A stretch of DNA of 64,000 nt, from sequence record PP885733.1. One strand, given 5' to 3'. Shown piece by piece: positions 8,663-21,018 of this stretch. Below the pieces are notes generated by a model, which searched no databases, was not told where the DNA came from, and saw nothing but the letters and a program-made list of their open reading frames with translations. Positions within the stretch are counted from its first letter, which is position 1, and each line of letters starts with the position of its first letter. Made by a program: the position numbers and the translations under genes.

Positions 8663-8704
8663 CATAACCCCTACCCCTCCTCACGGAGTGGGTAGGGGAA
8701 TATG
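8663..8704. terminator. Bidirectional intrinsic terminator; identical to 11639-11680
   Basis: CCCCTACCC-ctcc-TCAC-ggag-tGGGTAGGGG hairpin between convergent genes. Confidence 0.85.
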
Positions 8705-8709
8705 TTTCT

Positions 8710-11043
8710 TTAGAATTGTCGACCGAATCTTGCAAAGCGAGATTTCTTGGAACGTTGCTCAATCAGACGTTTCTGTCTTTCTTGTTTAGCGTTCTCAATG
8801 ATCTCATCGATGGTGATTGTTTTACGCATCTCTTTAGGAATCAATCCAGAGAGTTTACGTACTTCGGCTTCAATACGAGAAGCAATGGTACTGTTGTCTG
8901 TACCGAGTAGTTCTTTGGTTAAGTTGTTAATACGCTCTTTAATACGGATGAACATATCCAACTGCGCTTTCGTATACTTAGGTTCTTCCCCGTTGTCACG
9001 CAGAGTTTTAACCTCTGTCATCGTGGCGCCTTGTGGGATGTTGTAATAAGCTTTGTTGTACCCGAGCTTAATGAACCAGTAAGTCAGAAGCCAAGCAATT
9101 ACCAAGTCATCGTGACCTTTCGAGGCGTGGTCAATACGACCATCCTTATCAACTTCCAACCCGATCAATTCGTCAACAAGTAAAGGATAACCAATACCAG
9201 CTCCGGTAAGTGAAACAGCTTCAAAGATAAAGCCGTACATCTCACGACGGGTTTGTGGCGTGGTTGCAAATCCGAACTTACCTTTATACTTGAGGTAGAA
9301 CTCTTTTGTTCTGTACTTGAAGTTAACTTCACGAACATCACGGAGTTCAGACTCATAACGAATTGGGTACTGGTAGATGTCGTTAAACAGACGCTTGAAC
9401 GGATCAATACCATAAGCAGGCAGAGTGATAAGCAAACGCTCGATCATCATAGCTGCACGGTTTCGTTCAATAATCAGCATGGAGTTAGGGATGCGTATCA
9501 GGAGCTCTTTAACCACGTCTGTAACGTCGTCAAGGAACGCAAGAGGATAACGTCCTGTCCCAATTACTTCACCGCTCTTAAGTCGTCTGAGGACCAATGT
9601 ACATGCATCTCGGTCGTTCGCATCCGAGGTATCCATACCCATCAGTATGTATTCATCTTCGGAGTTGATGTAGAGATCGAGTTCTTCTTCTGAGATGAAC
9701 CAGTCTACGAATAGTCCGGTATCCAGAATCTCCTCATTGCGTAAGAACGATTTCTTAGATGATGCTAAAGACTCACGAGTGAAGTCGTCGAAGAGTTTGT
9801 TCATCCCTTCTTCTGTCCACATCATCAACAAGTCGATCTTAGCCTTAGACCAAGACAGACCCAGTTTGTCCATGGTCTCTTTCACCCAGTTAGGACCAAA
9901 GCCTAATTGCAGGTGAGTAAACATCATACCAATACGAGGAGAGGTGGTCTTAACCGGAGATGCTTTAATGCAGCGCTGAACCAAGTGACTCTCAGAGAAG
10001 CTATCGTAGAACGATTCACGCCACTCAGTAGAGTTCTTGAAATCATCGTGCATGTAACGACCTTCCGCCTTCAGGATCGAGTTAGGCGTTGTCGCTTTAG
10101 CTGTAAAGTAAGGAATACCTTTTTCACGTGCTTCTTTCTGCGCCGTCAGTGTTGCTGGCGCTGCACCGTTTACGATGTTTTCTATGTACTTCGTCCATGC
10201 AGGTTCGTCGTACAACAGAACTTCGAAGGTAGAACCACGAGCCACGTTCTCTGCGCCGTCCTCACCACCCGAAGGTACACGTACTTCAAAGGTGTTCTTT
10301 TTATCAGCCCCGAATGCTTCATAAGAAAGAATGTTACCAGCATCCTTATCCTTATATGTCATGTTACACATATAGTGAGGTAGAGCTGAACGTATCTTCT
10401 TAATCGCTTCAACGAACTGCATACGGTTCGAAGCCGCAAGTGTAATAAGACCGGTACGGAAACCACGACCAGTCAGATACTGCATAATAAATGTCAGTAC
10501 CTGCATCCCTACAGTTTTACCAGACTGACGAGGCATCAGGATAGTAGTAGGTAAATGGTTAAGGCAGCACCAGATGAAAGAGATAACAGCACGGTTAGCA
10601 CGGAAACGTGAGGAGCCGTTGACTTTCACTACTTCACGGATTGCATACCAGATGTTCTCATTACACTCATTGAGAATCATCATCTGCTGTTCATCCGTCA
10701 GATTAGGATCCCATGGGTCGAGATCTTTAATCAACGGGTTGTTAATCTGTAAGAGGAAGTAATAGTTCTTAATCCCCATCTGTCTGAACAGTTCTGCGGT
10801 ACGGAGGAATGACTTGTTACTTGTCTCTAAGTGAACTCCTCCCCCATATCGGGAGAAGTCCTTTAAGAAGCGTACAGTCTTCAGAGTCCATAAGCTATCT
10901 TCCTCATAATGAGCCACGATTCTTTCATCGTGATCGGTCAGAGGAGTTCGCTTATCCTTATCATCCATAAGGTACTCGGGAAGAGCCGCCGCTTTGCCTC
11001 CTAAATGAGTTAGGAGCTTCTTGGCGAGGCTTAACTTATCCAT
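8710..11043 (-). CDS. terL: Terminase large subunit
   Basis: Walker A PRQSGKT, Walker B LLYDE, RNase H-like nuclease MGMDTS and HDDLVIA; start placed at MDKLS after AAGGTG (track starts at 11055). Confidence 0.9.
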   Translation of the reverse strand: MDKLSLAKKLLTHLGGKAAALPEYLMDDKDKRTPLTDHDERIVAHYEEDSLWTLKTVRFLKDFSRYGGGVHLETSNKSFLRTAELFRQMGIKNYYFLLQINNPLIKDLDPWDPNLTDEQQMMILNECNENIWYAIREVVKVNGSSRFRANRAVISFIWCCLNHLPTTILMPRQSGKTVGMQVLTFIMQYLTGRGFRTGLITLAASNRMQFVEAIKKIRSALPHYMCNMTYKDKDAGNILSYEAFGADKKNTFEVRVPSGGEDGAENVARGSTFEVLLYDEPAWTKYIENIVNGAAPATLTAQKEAREKGIPYFTAKATTPNSILKAEGRYMHDDFKNSTEWRESFYDSFSESHLVQRCIKASPVKTTSPRIGMMFTHLQLGFGPNWVKETMDKLGLSWSKAKIDLLMMWTEEGMNKLFDDFTRESLASSKKSFLRNEEILDTGLFVDWFISEEELDLYINSEDEYILMGMDTSDANDRDACTLVLRRLKSGEVIGTGRYPLAFLDDVTDVVKELLIRIPNSMLIIERNRAAMMIERLLITLPAYGIDPFKRLFNDIYQYPIRYESELRDVREVNFKYRTKEFYLKYKGKFGFATTPQTRREMYGFIFEAVSLTGAGIGYPLLVDELIGLEVDKDGRIDHASKGHDDLVIAWLLTYWFIKLGYNKAYYNIPQGATMTEVKTLRDNGEEPKYTKAQLDMFIRIKERINNLTKELLGTDNSTIASRIEAEVRKLSGLIPKEMRKTITIDEIIENAKQERQKRLIEQRSKKSRFARFGRQF

Positions 11044-11638: not shown

Positions 11639-11680
11639 CATAACCCCTACCCCTCCTCACGGAGTGGGTAGGGGAATATG
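11639..11680. terminator. Bidirectional intrinsic terminator; identical to 8663-8704
   Basis: 42-bp exact copy between convergent genes. Confidence 0.85.
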
Positions 11681-11682
11681 AT

Positions 11683-12288
11683 TTATTTCATTTTTTCTAT
11701 CAGATAGTCAACGGAGGTTTCTGGAGTGATGATCTCAATATGAGTACCAGGAGACATGACTTCAAGAATCCCGATAGCATGAAGATATTTATCACGCATA
11801 ATCTTCCAGTTGGTTGGATCCTTCAACCAAAGATCTTTCTGATCGACAGCTCGGTCGCAATTGGCCAGTCGTTCAAGGAAGGTCTCGTGAGTAATGTCCA
11901 GGAAGAACAAGAAGTCAGGTGCGATATCATGCCCTGCTACTCGCAATGCCTTTTCATTGAGGGAGTAAACAGCGCTAGGCGGGAATCGCTCAGTAGACTG
12001 ATACACCATCGAACTCACCACGTTACGATCTGAGATCAAACCAGTATAGCGGTGTTGAGATACCACCATGTCGAAACACTCGATACGAGAAGCGATGATC
12101 ATCATCATCTCGTAGTGCTTCGGCAGATAGTTCGCATTGTTCATGCGTTTGATTTCTGCGGCATGAGGAGTTTCAGTAAACGGTTCGTTCACTAACCGCC
12201 AACCTAACTTCTCAGAGAGTTCTTTTGCCAGTCGTGATTTACCAGCAAAGTCCAAACCTTCTAACACGCCATACTTACGTTTAATCAT
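11683..12288 (-). CDS. tmk: Thymidylate (dTMP) kinase
   Basis: P-loop EGLDFAGKS, EP motif, ISDR motif, PDFLFFLD. Confidence 0.9.
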   Translation of the reverse strand: MIKRKYGVLEGLDFAGKSRLAKELSEKLGWRLVNEPFTETPHAAEIKRMNNANYLPKHYEMMMIIASRIECFDMVVSQHRYTGLISDRNVVSSMVYQSTERFPPSAVYSLNEKALRVAGHDIAPDFLFFLDITHETFLERLANCDRAVDQKDLWLKDPTNWKIMRDKYLHAIGILEVMSPGTHIEIITPETSVDYLIEKMK

Positions 12289-13760
12289 TATGTCATCGCA
12301 TCCATCGTTAAAGTTCGCAGGACGATGTAAAGCATCAACGAGGTACGCAGAGACGTGATCTTAATGTCAGTCTTGATACCAGTCATTGCTTTAACTAATT
12401 CGTCACCATTGTTTCTGAGCTTCAGCAATAGAGCGTTTGACGATTTACTTGAGGTGTATGCACCACGGATCTTAAAGAAGATATTCTTTATATCGTTGTG
12501 GCGAATGCTGTTGGAGTTGAGATACTCAAACAAGTGAGCGATCACATCATCAACAAACAGTCGGTACTGTTCACCTTTAGGGTGAGCGTACTGCATTGGG
12601 AAATCCCGAAGGATCATCTCAAGCTTATCAGCATCCGTTCTTGGTATTGCTTTAGCGGCATAGATTGCAAGTTCCTGTTTATAAAAACTGTTCTTGTCGT
12701 TCAATACACCACTAATATAGTTACGATAACGAGTCTCTCGTTTCTGAACATCTTTGATATTCAGTTCACCATCCAGGATGGCTAAACCAGAGTCGGTTTC
12801 CACCAGGTCGACGGAATCCTTAATCTCATACAGAACTTTGGTATAGTCGTTGATTACACCTTTGAGACGGGATTCCATATCGTTCACCATGTAAACGATT
12901 TTCTTATCGTTATCCATCTTCGTAAAGGCATCAAAGTGAATACCAGTACGAGGGTCGATAATGAACTCTGCACGAGCACGGAACAGCTCGTTCCATGAAC
13001 CATAACGCTTGATATCAAACTTCAACGAAAGCTTGTTGTAGGCGGTTACAGCGACACTGTGCTTAACAAGGTAGCCGTAATAGTGGTTCATGATAGAAGT
13101 CATGATACGATAGTGGAAAAGCATGATGATGTTAACCATCGCATCTTCTTTCAGGTTACGTGGTAGGTCTGAATTCCATACCCGGTGTAACAAATAGATG
13201 CAGGACAAGTTAAAGACTTCAGATGAAACTTTAAAGTCTTTGTTGATCCATTTGGTCTTGATCAGTTCATCTCGTAAACGCACTTCATCAACATCGATAA
13301 TGTCACGGAAGAAAGTAACACGATCAGAAGTTTTAAACAGAACACGATGCGTTCCCAGATATGGCGAGCCGAAGAACTCAGTGTGATCGTTGTCTTTCGT
13401 TGCGAAGCCATAGACGTAGCGCTTAAGGGTTTTAACCCAACGTTCGTTAATGACGAGATCATCCACATACGCGTCGAAGATGTCTTTAACAGCATCATCA
13501 CGGTTGTAGTTGAAGTTAGGTTGGAGTGCTTCCATACCGGCGACGAACTCTGGGGTTAACAGAGATTCCATACCGCCGAACTGGTTGAACGCAGGTATTG
13601 GACCAAACATTGTGACTGGAGCATCAGGGTTAGCAGCTTCTAACCCAGCCAACATCTCAGTCAGTTCGGGATCTTGCATTGAACGTTCATACAGTTCTTC
13701 TGGAGACAGTTCCACAAAGCGGTACTTAATAATACCGCTATATAAAGAACGTTTGTCCAT
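12288..13760 (-). CDS. Conserved phiKZ-like protein, probably virion-associated
   Basis: 490 aa, translationally coupled to its neighbours. Confidence 0.55.
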   Translation of the reverse strand: MDKRSLYSGIIKYRFVELSPEELYERSMQDPELTEMLAGLEAANPDAPVTMFGPIPAFNQFGGMESLLTPEFVAGMEALQPNFNYNRDDAVKDIFDAYVDDLVINERWVKTLKRYVYGFATKDNDHTEFFGSPYLGTHRVLFKTSDRVTFFRDIIDVDEVRLRDELIKTKWINKDFKVSSEVFNLSCIYLLHRVWNSDLPRNLKEDAMVNIIMLFHYRIMTSIMNHYYGYLVKHSVAVTAYNKLSLKFDIKRYGSWNELFRARAEFIIDPRTGIHFDAFTKMDNDKKIVYMVNDMESRLKGVINDYTKVLYEIKDSVDLVETDSGLAILDGELNIKDVQKRETRYRNYISGVLNDKNSFYKQELAIYAAKAIPRTDADKLEMILRDFPMQYAHPKGEQYRLFVDDVIAHLFEYLNSNSIRHNDIKNIFFKIRGAYTSSKSSNALLLKLRNNGDELVKAMTGIKTDIKITSLRTSLMLYIVLRTLTMDAMT

Positions 13761-14605
13761 TAGCGTTTCCTTGGGACGTACATTTTCAGTGAGTCAGCTT
13801 TACCCTTAGGATCAGAGTAAGCGAGATATTTCTTCATCTCATTGTAGTACATGTCTTTAAACTCACGACCTGCATCAGCATAGCCTTGAATCTCATCCTG
13901 GACATCTTCCACAGACACACCGAAACGACTAACAGCTTCCTGCATACCACGACGACAGTTCTTATAGATGTAAGCCTTAGTACCCAGCTCAATCCACTCA
14001 GCGAACTTGTCATGCATCTTCGGATGAAGAGATGTAAAGTGATCATCAAACGAGAGTACCACTTTGGCGATCATATTAAACATGGCAGAACCTGCATCAC
14101 GAATGATGAAGGAGTTATTACCTGTCATGGTAATGTTGGTAAAGGTACGCTGAACGTTACTGTCATCAAGACCGTTGATCAGACGGCTTAATGCATTGTT
14201 CATCTGCCCAGTACCACAGTTGGCATAACCACTAAAGTTATTACCATTCATGATAGCCCGGTTGATATTACCCGGATAGACTTCTAATACCTGCATGATG
14301 CGACGACCACCGGTTAAGAAGTCAGGAACGTTTACGGCAATTACACCACCGGCCAGGTTTTCAATTCGTGCATAACTAAGATCCACCACTTCAGTTGTAC
14401 CACCCGCCACGTTCATTAGCGGTGCACACATCTTCATGATAACCTTTTCACGAATACCCTGATCGACTGTGAATTCACTATTGACTGGTTGCCAAACACT
14501 ACCGTACCCGTTATTAGGATTGTCAAAAGCGAGTTTCAACATATACGGTGAGATGTCAGACGGACCATCAACAATGTAGTTGATAGCAAAATCTACAGCG
14601 CTCAT
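13760..14605 (-). CDS. Conserved phiKZ-like protein, probably virion-associated
   Basis: 281 aa, SD upstream, coupled to the next gene. Confidence 0.55.
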   Translation of the reverse strand: MSAVDFAINYIVDGPSDISPYMLKLAFDNPNNGYGSVWQPVNSEFTVDQGIREKVIMKMCAPLMNVAGGTTEVVDLSYARIENLAGGVIAVNVPDFLTGGRRIMQVLEVYPGNINRAIMNGNNFSGYANCGTGQMNNALSRLINGLDDSNVQRTFTNITMTGNNSFIIRDAGSAMFNMIAKVVLSFDDHFTSLHPKMHDKFAEWIELGTKAYIYKNCRRGMQEAVSRFGVSVEDVQDEIQGYADAGREFKDMYYNEMKKYLAYSDPKGKADSLKMYVPRKR

Positions 14606-14646
14606 ATTTATACCCTTGCAAGGAACTTACAAATGATTTAAACAGA

Positions 14647-14689
14647 CATAAACCCCTACCCCACCTTTCGGAGGAGTAGGGGCAATATG
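14647..14689 (-). terminator. Intrinsic terminator closing the RNA island transcript
   Basis: Minus strand CCCCTACTCC-tcc-GAAA-ggt-GGGGTAGGGG followed by TTTATGTCTGTTT; variant of the 8663/11639 family. Confidence 0.8.
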
Positions 14690-14696
14690 CTTTAAT

Positions 14697-14791
14697 CACC
14701 GACGGTCCCAAAGAGGTCTGGAGTCCTCTATCCCTGGAACCCGTTTCGTCCACTTATTTCACATCGTCGGACTCATCAGGGTGTACGATGC
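14697..14791 (-). ncRNA. Type I hammerhead ribozyme
   Basis: Minus strand: CACC (stem I)-CUGAUGA-GUCC...GGAC (stem II)-GAAA-CGG...CCG (stem III)-UC|GGUG; complete invariant core; 7-bp pseudoknot GCAUCGU/ACGAUGU between the 5' flank and loop II; predicted cut between 14701 and 14700. Confidence 0.92.
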
Positions 14792-15370
14792 TCCCACTAA
14801 GAAGTAGGTCGAGTTACCCGATATCGTGCAAATCTCATTGTGAGATCCATTGGTCACTTTGAACATCGATGTTCAGGACCCAAATGCAACTGTCGTTCGG
14901 GTAACTCAATAGGTGTGCTCAACGCTTAGAGCTGAACGACGAATCACGTCTGTCTCGTTCGCTCTAGGTCAAGCACGAATGGGTACAACGTTCCCAGCTC
15001 TGATAGATATTGTTTTTTATGACCGCCCAGGATGGAGTTCGGGTTCTACCATCATCTATAACCCGGATATACCGGGAGTGCATTCAGCTTATGCTACTGG
15101 ACATTCTATCAGCGCGTTGTGATAGCCGGAATCCCCGGCAACCCACCAGAGGCTACTTACAATAGCGGACTTCTGCCGCCGTTCACTCTCTGGATTTATC
15201 CCTGAGCAGGTGAAAGCTACTCAGAGTTTGCCTTCTCCAGCCAGTCGGGGAGGTGAGACCCCAATACCGGAGAAGGTCTTACAACCAATGTCGACTGGTA
15301 GACTCCTGTTAAGCGGCCCTGGCAGCAGGCGCATTAACCCAAATCTACGCTTCCCGACGTTTCGGTTGTT
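14701..15370 (-). ncRNA. Putative large structured ncRNA (~670 nt) ending in the hammerhead
   Basis: No credible ORF; nested helices 14811-14821/14897-14907 (11 bp perfect), 14915-14922/14969-14976, 15000-15007/15105-15112; pseudoknot 15231-15238/15269-15276 with 15241-15247/15292-15298; G-U pairs favour the minus strand. Confidence 0.65.
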
Positions 15371-15376
15371 ATCCTT

Positions 15377-15871
15377 TTAAACCGCACAGCCATCCTTGCA
15401 GTCGTTGTCAGGAATAATGGCAGCAGCTTCTTTCGTTGCTTCTTCCATACGTTCCTCGTTACGAGCTTGTGCGTCTTCCAGGTCGCCAAAGTGCAGGTTA
15501 TCCGGATCGAAGTTATCGATGGACACTTCTGGCTTGTCGGCCTTGAGTTCTTTGACTTTCGCTTCGAACTCGGTGAAACCGCCGATGTAAACATCATCGA
15601 GCAGAATCTGTGGAACAGTGCGAACTGGACGACCCAGCATTTCACTGAGCTTTTCGCCGTCAATACCTGCAGCGCGAATATCAACGTAAGTGAATTCGAT
15701 CTTTTCGCGTTCACACAGAGCTTTTGCGCTGTCGCAGTATGGGCAGTTCGGGCGTCCGTAAATTACAGCTTTCATTGTTGGTGGTCTCAGCTTGATAGTA
15801 ACTTCTCCACCCGATACAAAAGGCATGGAGTGCGGATAGTTATAAGGTTCTGGTGGTACGTAACCTTCCAT
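15377..15871 (-). CDS. Glutaredoxin with N-terminal extension and acidic Cys-containing tail
   Basis: CPYC active site, TVPQI and IGGF motifs; TAAGGA SD. Confidence 0.9.
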   Translation of the reverse strand: MEGYVPPEPYNYPHSMPFVSGGEVTIKLRPPTMKAVIYGRPNCPYCDSAKALCEREKIEFTYVDIRAAGIDGEKLSEMLGRPVRTVPQILLDDVYIGGFTEFEAKVKELKADKPEVSIDNFDPDNLHFGDLEDAQARNEERMEEATKEAAAIIPDNDCKDGCAV

Positions 15872-15886
15872 TATGAATCCTTAATA

Positions 15887-16250
15887 TGGCTCGGTCTTGA
15901 GAAGGTCTTCCTCAACTACTGTGATGACACCCAGTGGTAGAAACTAATCATCCACCATCATGTCACTACGACGTCTAAGACGCAACCGAGGTAATTTGAT
16001 AGGCAGGCTCCGAGTAACGATCTCGGCTTATCACTTAGTACAGTACAGAGGGAGTTGTCCCTAATAACCGCTAACAAGGTCACCCGAGTGGTTACGGGGG
16101 AGTTTGTACCTAAGCTTGCTCCCATAAGCAGCCGCCGTTGAAATATGGGTACGGGCTATTCGTCTTTACGTTGTGGTGGGAAGTGGATCCCAGGTATGGT
16201 CGCCGAAGCGCCCCTGGCCTGTTGTACCCAACTGCAAATAGCCCGTAGTT
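15887..16250 (-). ncRNA. Putative structured RNA (~360 nt) between tRNA-Ser and glutaredoxin
   Basis: ORF-free; helices 16150-16160/16237-16247, 16146-16151/16225-16230, 15997-16002/16028-16033, 15890-15896/15984-15990; cUUCGg tetraloop on the minus strand at ~16201-16210. Confidence 0.55.
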
Positions 16251-16252
16251 TC

Positions 16253-16341
16253 TGGCAGAGAGTAAGGGATTCGAACCCTTGTGCCCCGAAGGACAACCTC
16301 CTTAGCAGGGAGGCGACTTAAACCAGCTCATCCAACTCTCT
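16253..16341 (-). tRNA. tRNA-Ser(GCT), encoded CCA
   Basis: Cloverleaf, anticodon loop CTGCTAA, long variable arm with UUCG loop, GTTCGAATC T-loop, ends GCCA. Confidence 0.95.
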
Positions 16342-16345
16342 AATC

Positions 16346-16421
16346 TGGCGCTCGTGACAGGGCTCGAACCTGTGACATACGGATTAACAGTCCGCCGTTC
16401 TACCGACTGAACTACACGAGC
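16346..16421 (-). tRNA. tRNA-Asn(GTT), encoded CCA
   Basis: 76-nt cloverleaf, anticodon loop CTGTTAA, GTTCGAGCC T-loop, ends GCCA. Confidence 0.95.
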
Positions 16422-16427
16422 AAAACT

Positions 16428-16895
16428 TTAATTCGCACCAGAATGAATGTTGACTTTCGGAGAGTCGATAGTCAAAGATCCCGAAGCTCTGATGCTCAAA
16501 CCATCAGCGGCAGCTTTCTTGCCGTTGATTACTGAAACTGTTACACCAGTATCACTGATGACGTACGCTTCCATATCTGACGTGATGTAGATAGGAGGTA
16601 CTGGCATATCTTTGGGCGTGTTCTGATAAATGATGGCGACACAGTTATGCGGGAGATTGAGATCACCGGCAAAGTCACCTATCTGTTTTGTTTCAGGACA
16701 GACCCTGTAAACCGTGTAGTCATGATGGAGTACACGACAGCGTTCCTCGCTGATAATTGGGAGAATGCCTTTAGAGTTAAAGAACTCTTCCTTCATGGCA
16801 CTCACTTGCGCGATAGCTTGATCGGCAGGGAGATCTGAAACATCAACATTCATAAGAATGCGAGAATCAGGAGTACGAATGGTTTTCAACAACAT
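16428..16895 (-). CDS. Hypothetical protein
   Basis: 155 aa ending 6 nt before tRNA-Asn. Confidence 0.7.
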   Translation of the reverse strand: MLLKTIRTPDSRILMNVDVSDLPADQAIAQVSAMKEEFFNSKGILPIISEERCRVLHHDYTVYRVCPETKQIGDFAGDLNLPHNCVAIIYQNTPKDMPVPPIYITSDMEAYVISDTGVTVSVINGKKAAADGLSIRASGSLTIDSPKVNIHSGAN

Positions 16896-17073
16896 AGCTT
16901 TCTCACTTAGTTAGTTTAGTTGGAGTTTGCTAGTTCGATAATCCCCCGCTTTTCATTTAAGGAAGCGCTGATTCTTACTTACAATTCAAGGGATCCTCCG
17001 CCTTCGCCTGACACCTTGGTCAATGCAAATAGGATTCCAATCTATCGTGTTGGGAAGGGCTGCGGGGTTTATC

Positions 17074-17277
17074 TTATCCTGCGTTAAATGAAGAATGTAC
17101 AACGCCTGGTTCCTGAGAACCTGAAACGCCGATCATCTTCACCGTCACTGGATCGTATTTAGACCACAGTTCTGTGGCCTCGTACTTGGCAGCGCATTCG
17201 CTAACTGCCGCTACGACACAAGAGTCGTATTCATCATATCCTACAGAATCGGTTCTTTCTACGATATACAGATTCAT
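17074..17277 (-). CDS. Small phage hypothetical protein
   Basis: MNLYIVERTDSVGYDEYDSCVVAA...HSSFNAG, a pattern common in phage small proteins; start placed at the internal ATG (track starts at 17388). Confidence 0.7.
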   Translation of the reverse strand: MNLYIVERTDSVGYDEYDSCVVAAVSECAAKYEATELWSKYDPVTVKMIGVSGSQEPGVVHSSFNAG

Positions 17278-17546
17278 CAATTTAGCCTCAGTTATTAAAC
17301 GATCAGTGTTTATAACGTCGGTAGAATGTGTGATATCGATTTTTCCAAATTGTGATTGACTTATACTTTCCGTAGGCGTCACTCTCACAGAAAGACCTGT
17401 CTCGACTCATGCAACCATTTAGTTGCGGCGTCCGTCACAGGTAGACATCGGGTAGTCCCGCAGAAGAGGCAGAGTGCCATGGCGTAACACTCACTTTGAT
17501 CTACGGGACTTTGATCGTTACAGAGTATAGAACTCTGACTGATTAA

Positions 17547-17822
17547 TTACTTTACTTCGTACCAGTCTTTACCATTCAGGTCGCTTACTGACGGAACCCA
17601 GGTGTTGACTGTCCCGGTTTTGGCATTGACGATAACGAAGAAAGGTTCGACGTATGCTTGCTCACCATCAGGGAGAGTTACATCGATGGCCGCTACTGAA
17701 CCATGTTGTTGAACGTAGATATCTTTACCGTTCCATCCAGCGCGAGCTACCTTGCGACGATTCTGCTTGAGAAGCAAAGCTTCTGGATAACCCATCCCTG
17801 GTGTTGCGAGTTGCTGAGTCAT
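17547..17822 (-). CDS. tad2: DUF2829 / Tad2-like cyclic-nucleotide sponge (anti-Thoeris)
   Basis: Family hallmarks KVARAGWNGK and WVPSVSDLNGKDW; 91 aa; AAAGGTG SD. Confidence 0.8.
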   Translation of the reverse strand: MTQQLATPGMGYPEALLLKQNRRKVARAGWNGKDIYVQQHGSVAAIDVTLPDGEQAYVEPFFVIVNAKTGTVNTWVPSVSDLNGKDWYEVK

Positions 17823-20886: not shown

Positions 20887-21018
20887 TTAAATTAATTTCT
20901 GACTCCTATTCTTATCTATTGTTTAGGGGTAGGGGTTTATCCGGACAGGATGAATTAATATAATTACTGAACGAAGTGAAGTATCCTTATTCCATCTGTT
21001 TACCAAAGGTAAGTTAAA

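Follow-up and report, generated by a model that had tools for sequence, protein, structure and literature searches.

Nucleotides (nt) 1-64000 of Pantoea phage Survivor (PP885733.1; genome 271.6 kb), hereafter the window, contain a candidate self-cleaving hammerhead ribozyme in a gap between two genes. The gap (14606-15376, 771 nt) holds no annotated or conserved open reading frame (ORF) and is flanked by a glutaredoxin gene and by the gene for a 281-residue virion protein; the annotated genes from 11683 to 17822, including those for two transfer RNAs (tRNA-Asn and tRNA-Ser), are all on the minus strand. From the orientation of these genes and of a terminator-like hairpin within the gap, we infer that the ribozyme locus is transcribed from the minus strand. 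On that strand, positions 14791 to 14697 read as a complete type I hammerhead with an open-ended stem I and a predicted cut between C14701 and G14700, lying at the 3' end of a much longer conserved RNA that we call RNA-A.

A type I hammerhead in an intergenic gap

In minus-strand order, the element runs GCAUCGU-A-CACC-CUGAUGA-GUCC-G-ACGAUGU-GAAAUAAGU-GGAC-GAAA-CGG...CCG-UC-GGUG, with cleavage predicted directly after the UC (Table 1), the position of the cut being set by standard hammerhead numbering. The hammerhead class is defined by C3 U4 G5 A6 N7 G8 A9, G12 A13 A14, an A15.1-U16.1 pair and any nucleotide except G (H) at position 17, all of which are present in Survivor, where A15.1 is 14744 and U16.1 is 14702, as well as throughout a family of 13 homologous sequences. 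Three helices (I, II and III) surround the core, as indicated by base-pair conservation and covariation, and the tertiary contact that holds stems I and II parallel is provided by a pseudoknot of 6-7 base pairs (bp). The element thus has each of the sequence and structure features by which the class is recognised, and self-cleavage activity is predicted for it.

The pseudoknot joins the 5' flank to loop II through seven complementary positions, six of them Watson-Crick and one G.U, and the A-rich remainder of loop II would serve as its return strand. In the Survivor copy, loop II measures 17 nt, stem I 4 bp and stem III 43 nt, and the apical loop of stem III, ACUCCAGA at 14724-14717, follows a YUCCAR pattern that is conserved across the family. 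The hammerhead fold (-23.5 kcal/mol), together with an estimated -7.6 kcal/mol for the pseudoknot duplex, is competitive with the best nested fold of the same sequence (-27.0 kcal/mol).

A descriptor for type I hammerheads (CUGANGA, GAAA and UH, with at least 3 bp in stem I, at least 3 bp in stem II and at least 4 bp in stem III) matched this site and no other on either strand of the window. Simulating the window 300 times with a first-order Markov model gave an expectation of 0.043 matches per window under the descriptor settings and of 0.01 when the stems had to be as long as those seen, a chance rate that is low yet not negligible over many windows, so that the decisive evidence is comparative. 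At gathering thresholds, Rfam 15 listed two tRNAs in the whole window and no hammerhead.

Table 1. Coordinates of the hammerhead, RNA-A and associated features; Survivor positions are those of the window, and positions in relatives are those of the locus named.
Feature	Coordinates	Strand	Basis
Whole type I hammerhead, including the 5' pseudoknot strand	14697-14791	-	Sequence; sole descriptor match
Pseudoknot 5' strand GCAUCGU, 5' flank of stem I	14785-14791	-	Complementary to 14761-14767
Stem I 5' strand CACC (2.4-2.1)	14780-14783	-	Pairs with 14697-14700
Catalytic core CUGAUGA (C3 U4 G5 A6 U7 G8 A9)	14773-14779	-	Invariant save position 7
Stem II 5' strand GUCC (10.1-10.4)	14769-14772	-	Pairs with 14748-14751
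Pseudoknot 3' strand ACGAUGU in loop II	14761-14767	-	Covaries with 14785-14791
A-rich rest of loop II, GAAAUAAGU	14752-14760	-	A-rich segment kept in all relatives
Stem II 3' strand GGAC (11.4-11.1)	14748-14751	-	Covariation analysis
Core G12 A13 A14	14745-14747	-	Invariant in 13 sequences
Stem III: A15.1-U16.1 and CGG/CCG base, then extended irregular hairpin (43 nt)	14702-14744	-	Predicted fold, covariation
C17, predicted cleavage site (scissile phosphate 14701/14700)	14701	-	GUC triplet invariant in 13 members
Stem I 3' strand GGUG (1.1-1.4), start of predicted 3' product	14697-14700	-	Covariation analysis
RNA-A body, structured non-coding RNA with the hammerhead as 3' domain	14792-15365 (5' end approximate)	-	Conservation, covariation
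Intrinsic-terminator-like hairpin (14682-14653) and U-rich tract (14652-14640)	14640-14682	-	Fold; compensatory changes in relatives
RNA-B in relatives, absent from the window	L003:3453-3740, L005:1531-1800, L004:1637-1960, L007:1598-1890

Conservation and covariation of the hammerhead

The syntenic locus carries the ribozyme in 13 distinct sequences, comprising eight isolates (Survivor, pEt-SU, N1M2, Kc263, Yubaba, SXP01, AH04 and OBP) and five uncultivated jumbo-phage contigs, of which four are IMG/VR contigs of 261-271 kb and one is a short metagenome contig (L034). A further phage, Sureiya, which was left out of the alignment, matches the gap almost as Yubaba does. Throughout the 13 sequences, CUGA-N-GA, GAAA, the A15.1-U16.1 pair and the GUC triplet are invariant, and N7 alone varies, occurring as U, C or A; N7 is the only core position known to be free. 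An unchanging core with a variable N7 is the pattern expected from selection for catalysis.

We measured covariation on an alignment of the 13 sequences (A4) for the proposed structure, whose 22 pairs include the pseudoknot. Overall, 91.6% of cells were paired, compared with 25-52% when the 3' partners were slid by 1-3 columns, and both-sided (compensatory) changes occurred in 12 of the 22 pairs, a result matched by none of 500 shuffles. The pseudoknot was paired in 97.4% of cells, and four of its six pairs covaried (n = 13), with variants including CAUCGU/ACGAUG, CAUCGC/GCGAUG, UGUCGU/ACGACA, CGUCGA/UCGACG and GUUCGU/GCGAAC. All four pairs of stem I covaried as well (CACC/GGUG, CUAU/AUAG, ACAU/AUGU); the three inner pairs were kept in 12-13 of the 13 sequences and the outermost formed in six, making the stem effectively 3-4 bp long. 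The fourth, distal pair of stem II was C-G in six sequences, U-A in four and unpaired in three, and compensatory changes were also seen in three of the four pairs of the stem III extension (alignment columns 61-64 with 91-94).

The family covariance model (R1), derived from this alignment, found one site in the window and scored it at 95.5 bits over 14697-14793, the Survivor copy being a seed member. These results bear on a preliminary description of the locus, which had been made from its letters alone: the minus-strand sequence given there is exactly the one we read, the invariant hammerhead nucleotides it claimed are all present and remain unchanged across the homologous sequences, with variation confined to the free position N7, and the short 4-bp stem I and the pseudoknot between loop II and the 5' flank that it proposed as a support for this stem are both backed by compensatory changes.

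RNA-A, a large structured RNA that ends in the hammerhead

Upstream of the hammerhead, RNA-A extends to about 665 nt with the ribozyme included, is free of ORFs and sits in the tRNA island of these phages. The Survivor gap is 76.6-77.5% identical in nucleotide sequence to that of pEt-SU from end to end, and conserved blocks are found in all relatives. An RNA-A profile detected the RNA in every ribozyme-bearing sequence and nowhere else, amounting to 13 jumbo-phage sequences, and every RNA-A that was found carries the hammerhead. Its holders belong to Petsuvirus, Nimduovirus, Branisovskavirus and Meadowvirus, together with OBP and SXP01-type jumbo phages.

For ten full-length copies of RNA-A, RNAalifold predicted 150 pairs, 77 of which showed both-sided changes, and a more conservative run yielded 78 pairs with 41 compensatory. 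Restricting the analysis to 64 pairs outside the ribozyme, we found that 91.5% of cells were paired and that 36 pairs had both-sided changes, against 6-14 in slid controls, the structure being derived from the same alignment on which it was evaluated. Across the ten aligned sequences of RNA-A and ribozyme, no ORF was conserved in position, frame or length. Two annotated genes overlap the locus in relatives, N1M2 gp252 (L003:2733-3245), antisense to RNA-A, and Kc263 gp258 (L004:1532-1723), over the hammerhead; neither ORF is conserved in close relatives, and both are probably spurious gene calls.

Database searches did not assign RNA-A to a described family. Apart from the tRNAs, Rfam returned weak, sub-threshold matches to unrelated families for 14400-16500 (E 0.03-10) and no large-RNA family, and the homologous loci of six relatives gave no large-RNA family at E <= 1. 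None of the models for GOLLD, ROOL, RNase P RNA, transfer-messenger RNA (tmRNA) or group I and II introns matched RNA-A, and Rfam in E-value mode on nine related loci produced no family for RNA-A or for the downstream RNA-B described below, and no usable hammerhead match. ARAGORN identified no tmRNA, and a blastn search of RNA-A against E. coli genomes and plasmids was without a match, giving no sign of a host origin. A scan for RNA-A made independently of the hammerhead, using a narrow pattern that missed pEt-SU, returned chance matches and two known members only, and no RNA-A without a hammerhead among them.

In N1M2 and Yubaba, the conserved RNA begins directly after a tRNA-Met gene, and the 5' end of RNA-A in these phages may arise from tRNA processing. 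Within RNA-A, the segment AAUCCAGAG (15186-15193) resembles the apical loop of stem III and is predicted to pair with CUCUGG at approximately 15146-15151. The apical loop could dock on, or compete for, a CUGG/UUGG strand of RNA-A; several such segments are complementary to the apical UCCAG, and the 10-13 available sequences do not single out a partner. The preliminary description had placed the hammerhead at the end of a long ORF-free RNA and outside any repeat element, and this location is borne out by the conserved structured RNA upstream and the terminator just downstream, the only recurring sequence being the terminator motif.

The host phage is Petsuvirus-like and probably belongs with the Chimalliviridae, a nucleus-forming family; NCBI leaves it unclassified. 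Its 281-residue protein beside the ribozyme locus is 91% identical to the counterpart in Edwardsiella phage pEt-SU, a member of the genus Petsuvirus that the NCBI taxonomy places in the Chimalliviridae along with Nimduovirus, Branisovskavirus and Meadowvirus. More distant homologues of this protein occur in phiKZ-like phages (OMKO1, Churi) and in EL, Goslar and RAY, and OBP has been reported to encode chimallin (PMC10299810). The earlier view of the DNA as that of a nucleus-forming jumbo phage agrees with this placement, relatedness being the ground on which nucleus formation is attributed to it.

Two further features were noted on the upstream side. A stretch of 380 nt between the tRNA-Ser and glutaredoxin genes (15872-16252) is unannotated, and the glutaredoxin ORF of Survivor (15377-15871, 164 residues) is approximately 1.3-2 times as long as the thioredoxin-domain genes that relatives carry at this place (79-122 residues).

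Terminator, RNA-B and the downstream region

Downstream of the predicted cut, a spacer of 18 nt leads to a hairpin of the form CCCCUACUCCUCC-GAAA-GGUGGGGUAGGGG followed by UUUAUGUCUGUUU; its two arms of 13 nt each flank the GAAA loop, and the tail is U-rich. It combines the G+C-rich hairpin and U-rich tract of an intrinsic terminator at the end of a transcription unit; a simple terminator scanner did not list the hairpin at 14682-14640. A terminator-type motif, GGGGTAGGGGTT(T/A), occurs four times in the window against 0.01 expected (8665-8677, 11641-11653 and 14650-14662 on the minus strand; 20926-20938 on the plus strand), one copy lying immediately 3' of the stop codon of the last gene in the next minus-strand block. 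The motif recurs in relatives too, at several places per record, and has the look of a signal that this phage group generally uses to stop transcription.

A short conserved motif on the minus strand (14606-14640), reading AAUCAUUUGUAA in Survivor and resembling GAUCAUAUGA in relatives, follows the terminator and precedes the start codon of the 281-residue protein gene. It might serve as a promoter for an RNA polymerase that the phage itself encodes.

In ten of the 13 sequences, the space between the cleavage site and the terminator is occupied by a second conserved structured RNA of 260-300 nt, RNA-B, in which 31 of 65 predicted pairs covary and a hairpin loop, GCCYUAACYGUGA, is conserved. At blastn sensitivity, RNA-B occurs nowhere in the complete genomes of Survivor, pEt-SU and SXP01, all three of which keep the ribozyme.

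Distribution beyond the family

At the syntenic loci of the Aeromonas phages PS1, D6 and ZPAH34, and of RisingSun and EL, neither the ribozyme nor RNA-A was found by the descriptor, the covariance model or the RNA-A profile in a stretch reaching approximately 2.5 kb to either side of the marker gene. The gaps of the Aeromonas phages hold extra tRNAs where RNA-A and the ribozyme would sit. Unannotated tRNA-like matches were seen in PS1 (L046:1544-1625), ZPAH34 (L048:1890-1968) and D6 (L047:99-172), scoring 46.7, 38.2 and 30.3 bits against a gathering score of 29; those of PS1 and ZPAH34 lie within the syntenic intergenic gap, and that of D6 at the upstream edge of its tRNA cluster.

When IMG/VR and the metagenome and genome collections were scanned with patterns, the family gained two metagenome sequences, L034 and L035, the latter a duplicate of L013; all other hits were ordinary hammerheads or chance matches. 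A relaxed scan of IMG/VR yielded no further family members, and the pattern scan of bacterial and archaeal genomes yielded none. The family model scored members at 77-96 bits and ordinary phage type I hammerheads at 20-39 bits, a comparison that is partly circular in that the ordinary hammerheads had been fetched with the same core pattern.

The unrelated phage contigs L030, L084, L061, L110 and L114 share the design: their stem I spans 3-5 bp, their loop II 15-19 nt and their pseudoknot 6-10 bp. The architecture is already known, and the jumbo-phage family is a new member of the hammerhead class. In contigs from activated sludge and another metagenome (L030:700-786, minus strand, and L024:95-181), a hammerhead of this design lies between two ORFs without RNA-A; its stem I is 3 bp long, its pseudoknot is UACCGG/CCGGUA, its loop II is A-rich and its cleavage triplet is GUA. 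An IMG/VR contig of 17.5 kb (L010) carries four hammerhead-like sites on the plus strand, at 8882, 11187, 11467 and 12135, within a span of approximately 3.3 kb; such clustering of hammerheads is an arrangement described for prophages.

Discussion

Taken together, the sequence comparisons suggest that the element is a genuine type I self-cleaving hammerhead that forms the 3'-terminal domain of RNA-A, and that its conserved job is most likely to define the 3' end of this RNA, a reading to which we assign a probability of roughly 0.78. Under this reading, RNA-A would be a minus-strand transcript and would come after two tRNA genes and the glutaredoxin gene on that strand. In the fold backed by covariation, two stems of 4 bp (I and II) and a long, irregular one (III) would then meet at the core, and pairing over 6-7 bp of the 5' flank with the first half of loop II would keep stems I and II side by side, an arrangement that natural hammerheads need for fast cleavage. 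By the established hammerhead mechanism, the 2'-oxygen of C17 (14701) would attack the adjacent phosphate in-line, with G12 (14747) as the general base and G8 (14774) participating in acid catalysis. One predicted product is RNA-A ending in a 2',3'-cyclic phosphate and retaining the whole ribozyme; the other, in Survivor, would be a piece of approximately 50-60 nt with a 5'-hydroxyl, made up of the 18-nt spacer and the terminator hairpin. Since this 3' product would be held by only 3-4 bp, we propose that it dissociates at once, rendering the reaction irreversible. In ten relatives, cleavage at this site would part RNA-A from RNA-B. Because Survivor, pEt-SU and SXP01 keep the ribozyme without RNA-B, the conserved job is probably to make the 3' end of RNA-A and not to release a downstream RNA.

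Several observations weigh against this interpretation. The preliminary description had named Rfam hammerhead models as a check on the element, and these models did not recognise it: the best hammerhead match in E-value mode over 14400-16500 was a partial one to Hammerhead_3, at 15.5 bits compared with a gathering score of 48.5 and with E = 10, and nothing was found in six related loci. The models tested, RF00163, RF00008 and the rest of clan CL00010, serve as a detection criterion and do not define the class, and the miss is probably due to a long loop II, a long stem III and a 3-4-bp stem I that lie outside the seed alignments, not to absence of the motif; support for the element consequently comes from comparative analysis and not from the database. 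Stem I itself is only 3-4 bp long, with an internal A.A mismatch in pEt-SU, and the three inner pairs of stem II and four basal pairs of stem III are invariant and thus neutral on pairing. Finally, removal of a terminator hairpin that would ordinarily protect the 3' end would offer no obvious benefit, and the proposed maturation role follows from the distribution of the element, not from its mechanism.

We weighed these points against other explanations of the same conservation. A real ribozyme might have been selected for the 5' end that it gives to the RNA downstream, either RNA-B or a read-through messenger RNA of the 281-residue virion protein gene. Its 5'-hydroxyl end would be poorly recognised by 5'-end-dependent ribonucleases, and the Survivor copy of the ribozyme would then be a leftover. 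Covarying RNA-B does start right past the cleavage site in ten of 13 sequences, and polycistronic phage transcripts often have hammerheads between their genes (PMC3088659), L030 being an example. We nevertheless consider this unlikely overall, if plausible for the relatives that carry RNA-B, given that the genomes of Survivor, pEt-SU and SXP01 retain an intact, covarying ribozyme and pseudoknot in the absence of RNA-B, and that a conserved terminator and a conserved motif before the next start codon part the ribozyme from the downstream gene. Less probable still is a purely structural role, in which the hammerhead-shaped domain of RNA-A makes no cut in vivo, whether because the rest of the RNA or a protein blocks it or because it acts only as a three-way-junction scaffold. 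The failure of the Rfam models to recognise the element, its very short stem I, the conserved YUCCAR loop of stem III with its suggestion of other contacts, and the inactive hammerhead-like RNAs on record (PMC3088659) would all fit such a role. Against it, G5, A6, G8, G12, A13, A14 and C17 are invariant although they have no role in secondary structure, and the sole core position that varies is the catalytically free one, which argues for selection on cleavage and not on shape alone.

We give very little credence to the idea that the site resembles the hammerhead consensus by chance or belongs to a protein-coding gene that escaped annotation. Descriptors with short stems do match random sequence, at 0.01-0.04 per 64 kb, a mechanically called ORF of 61 residues (14568-14753) overlaps the site, and Kc263 has an annotated coding sequence for a hypothetical protein of 63 residues over its copy. 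Both versions are contradicted by the comparative data, in that compensatory changes extend across the 13 sequences and no ORF is conserved in the ten that were aligned.

The 3'-terminal hammerhead proposed here can be placed among known systems. Stem I/II pseudoknots occur in approximately 40% of natural hammerheads, in all three types, and are required for fast cleavage, and intergenic regions of phages carry hammerheads (Perreault et al. 2011, PMC3088659). Compared with the pseudoknotted type I hammerheads of phages and prophages in that study, the jumbo-phage element shares the core, the three-way junction, the open stem I and the phage intergenic setting, and its tertiary lock is likewise a pseudoknot of 6-7 bp and not a loop-loop contact. 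It differs in having an unusually long stem III (43 nt) with a conserved apical loop and in scoring below Rfam thresholds; nor does it stand as a unit between ORFs, making up instead the last domain of a large structured RNA. RNA-A, for its part, resembles GOLLD and ROOL as a phage-encoded non-coding RNA of several hundred nt with many covarying helices and adjoining tRNA genes. Unlike these RNAs, it matches neither of their Rfam models even at permissive thresholds, and its hosts are Chimalliviridae that infect Gammaproteobacteria; to our knowledge, neither GOLLD nor ROOL has been described as ending in a self-cleaving ribozyme. Ribozymes that set the ends of RNAs are familiar from the hepatitis delta virus (HDV)-like ribozymes located 5'-terminally in retrotransposon RNAs and from engineered hammerhead and HDV insulators. 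As in those cases, a ribozyme acting in cis would fix an exact terminus independently of the polymerase and leave 2',3'-cyclic-phosphate and 5'-hydroxyl ends. In contrast to these eukaryotic and synthetic examples, the predicted ribozyme would here stay on a phage non-coding RNA and remove a terminator or a second RNA.

Phages frequently carry hammerheads, and the ribozyme class as such is not new. Our literature search, covering sources outside subscription journals, found no report of a hammerhead in Chimalliviridae or jumbo phages and none of RNA-A. Current Rfam models miss long-loop, pseudoknotted variants with a short stem I, of which this family is an instance. The prediction is specific, pointing to a single phosphodiester bond and to two end chemistries that would be diagnostic of its cleavage, and relatives with and without RNA-B offer a natural comparison from which the purpose of the cut might be read.

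More broadly, we think it rather likely, with less confidence than we place in the 3'-end assignment itself, that the hammerhead is the maturation module of large, ornate phage RNAs that form a family not described before and are restricted to a single clade of nucleus-forming Chimalliviridae, in which RNA-A has a function of its own that needs a precise cyclic-phosphate 3' end. With more than 60 covariation-supported pairs, such an RNA might act as a scaffold, as a ribozyme, or as a partner of the translation or RNA-export machinery. RNA-A is the more novel item, more so than the ribozyme, which would mark the exact 3' boundary of an apparently undescribed, covarying non-coding RNA in at least five genera of nucleus-forming phages and would give a handle on this RNA in a system that keeps transcription physically apart from translation.

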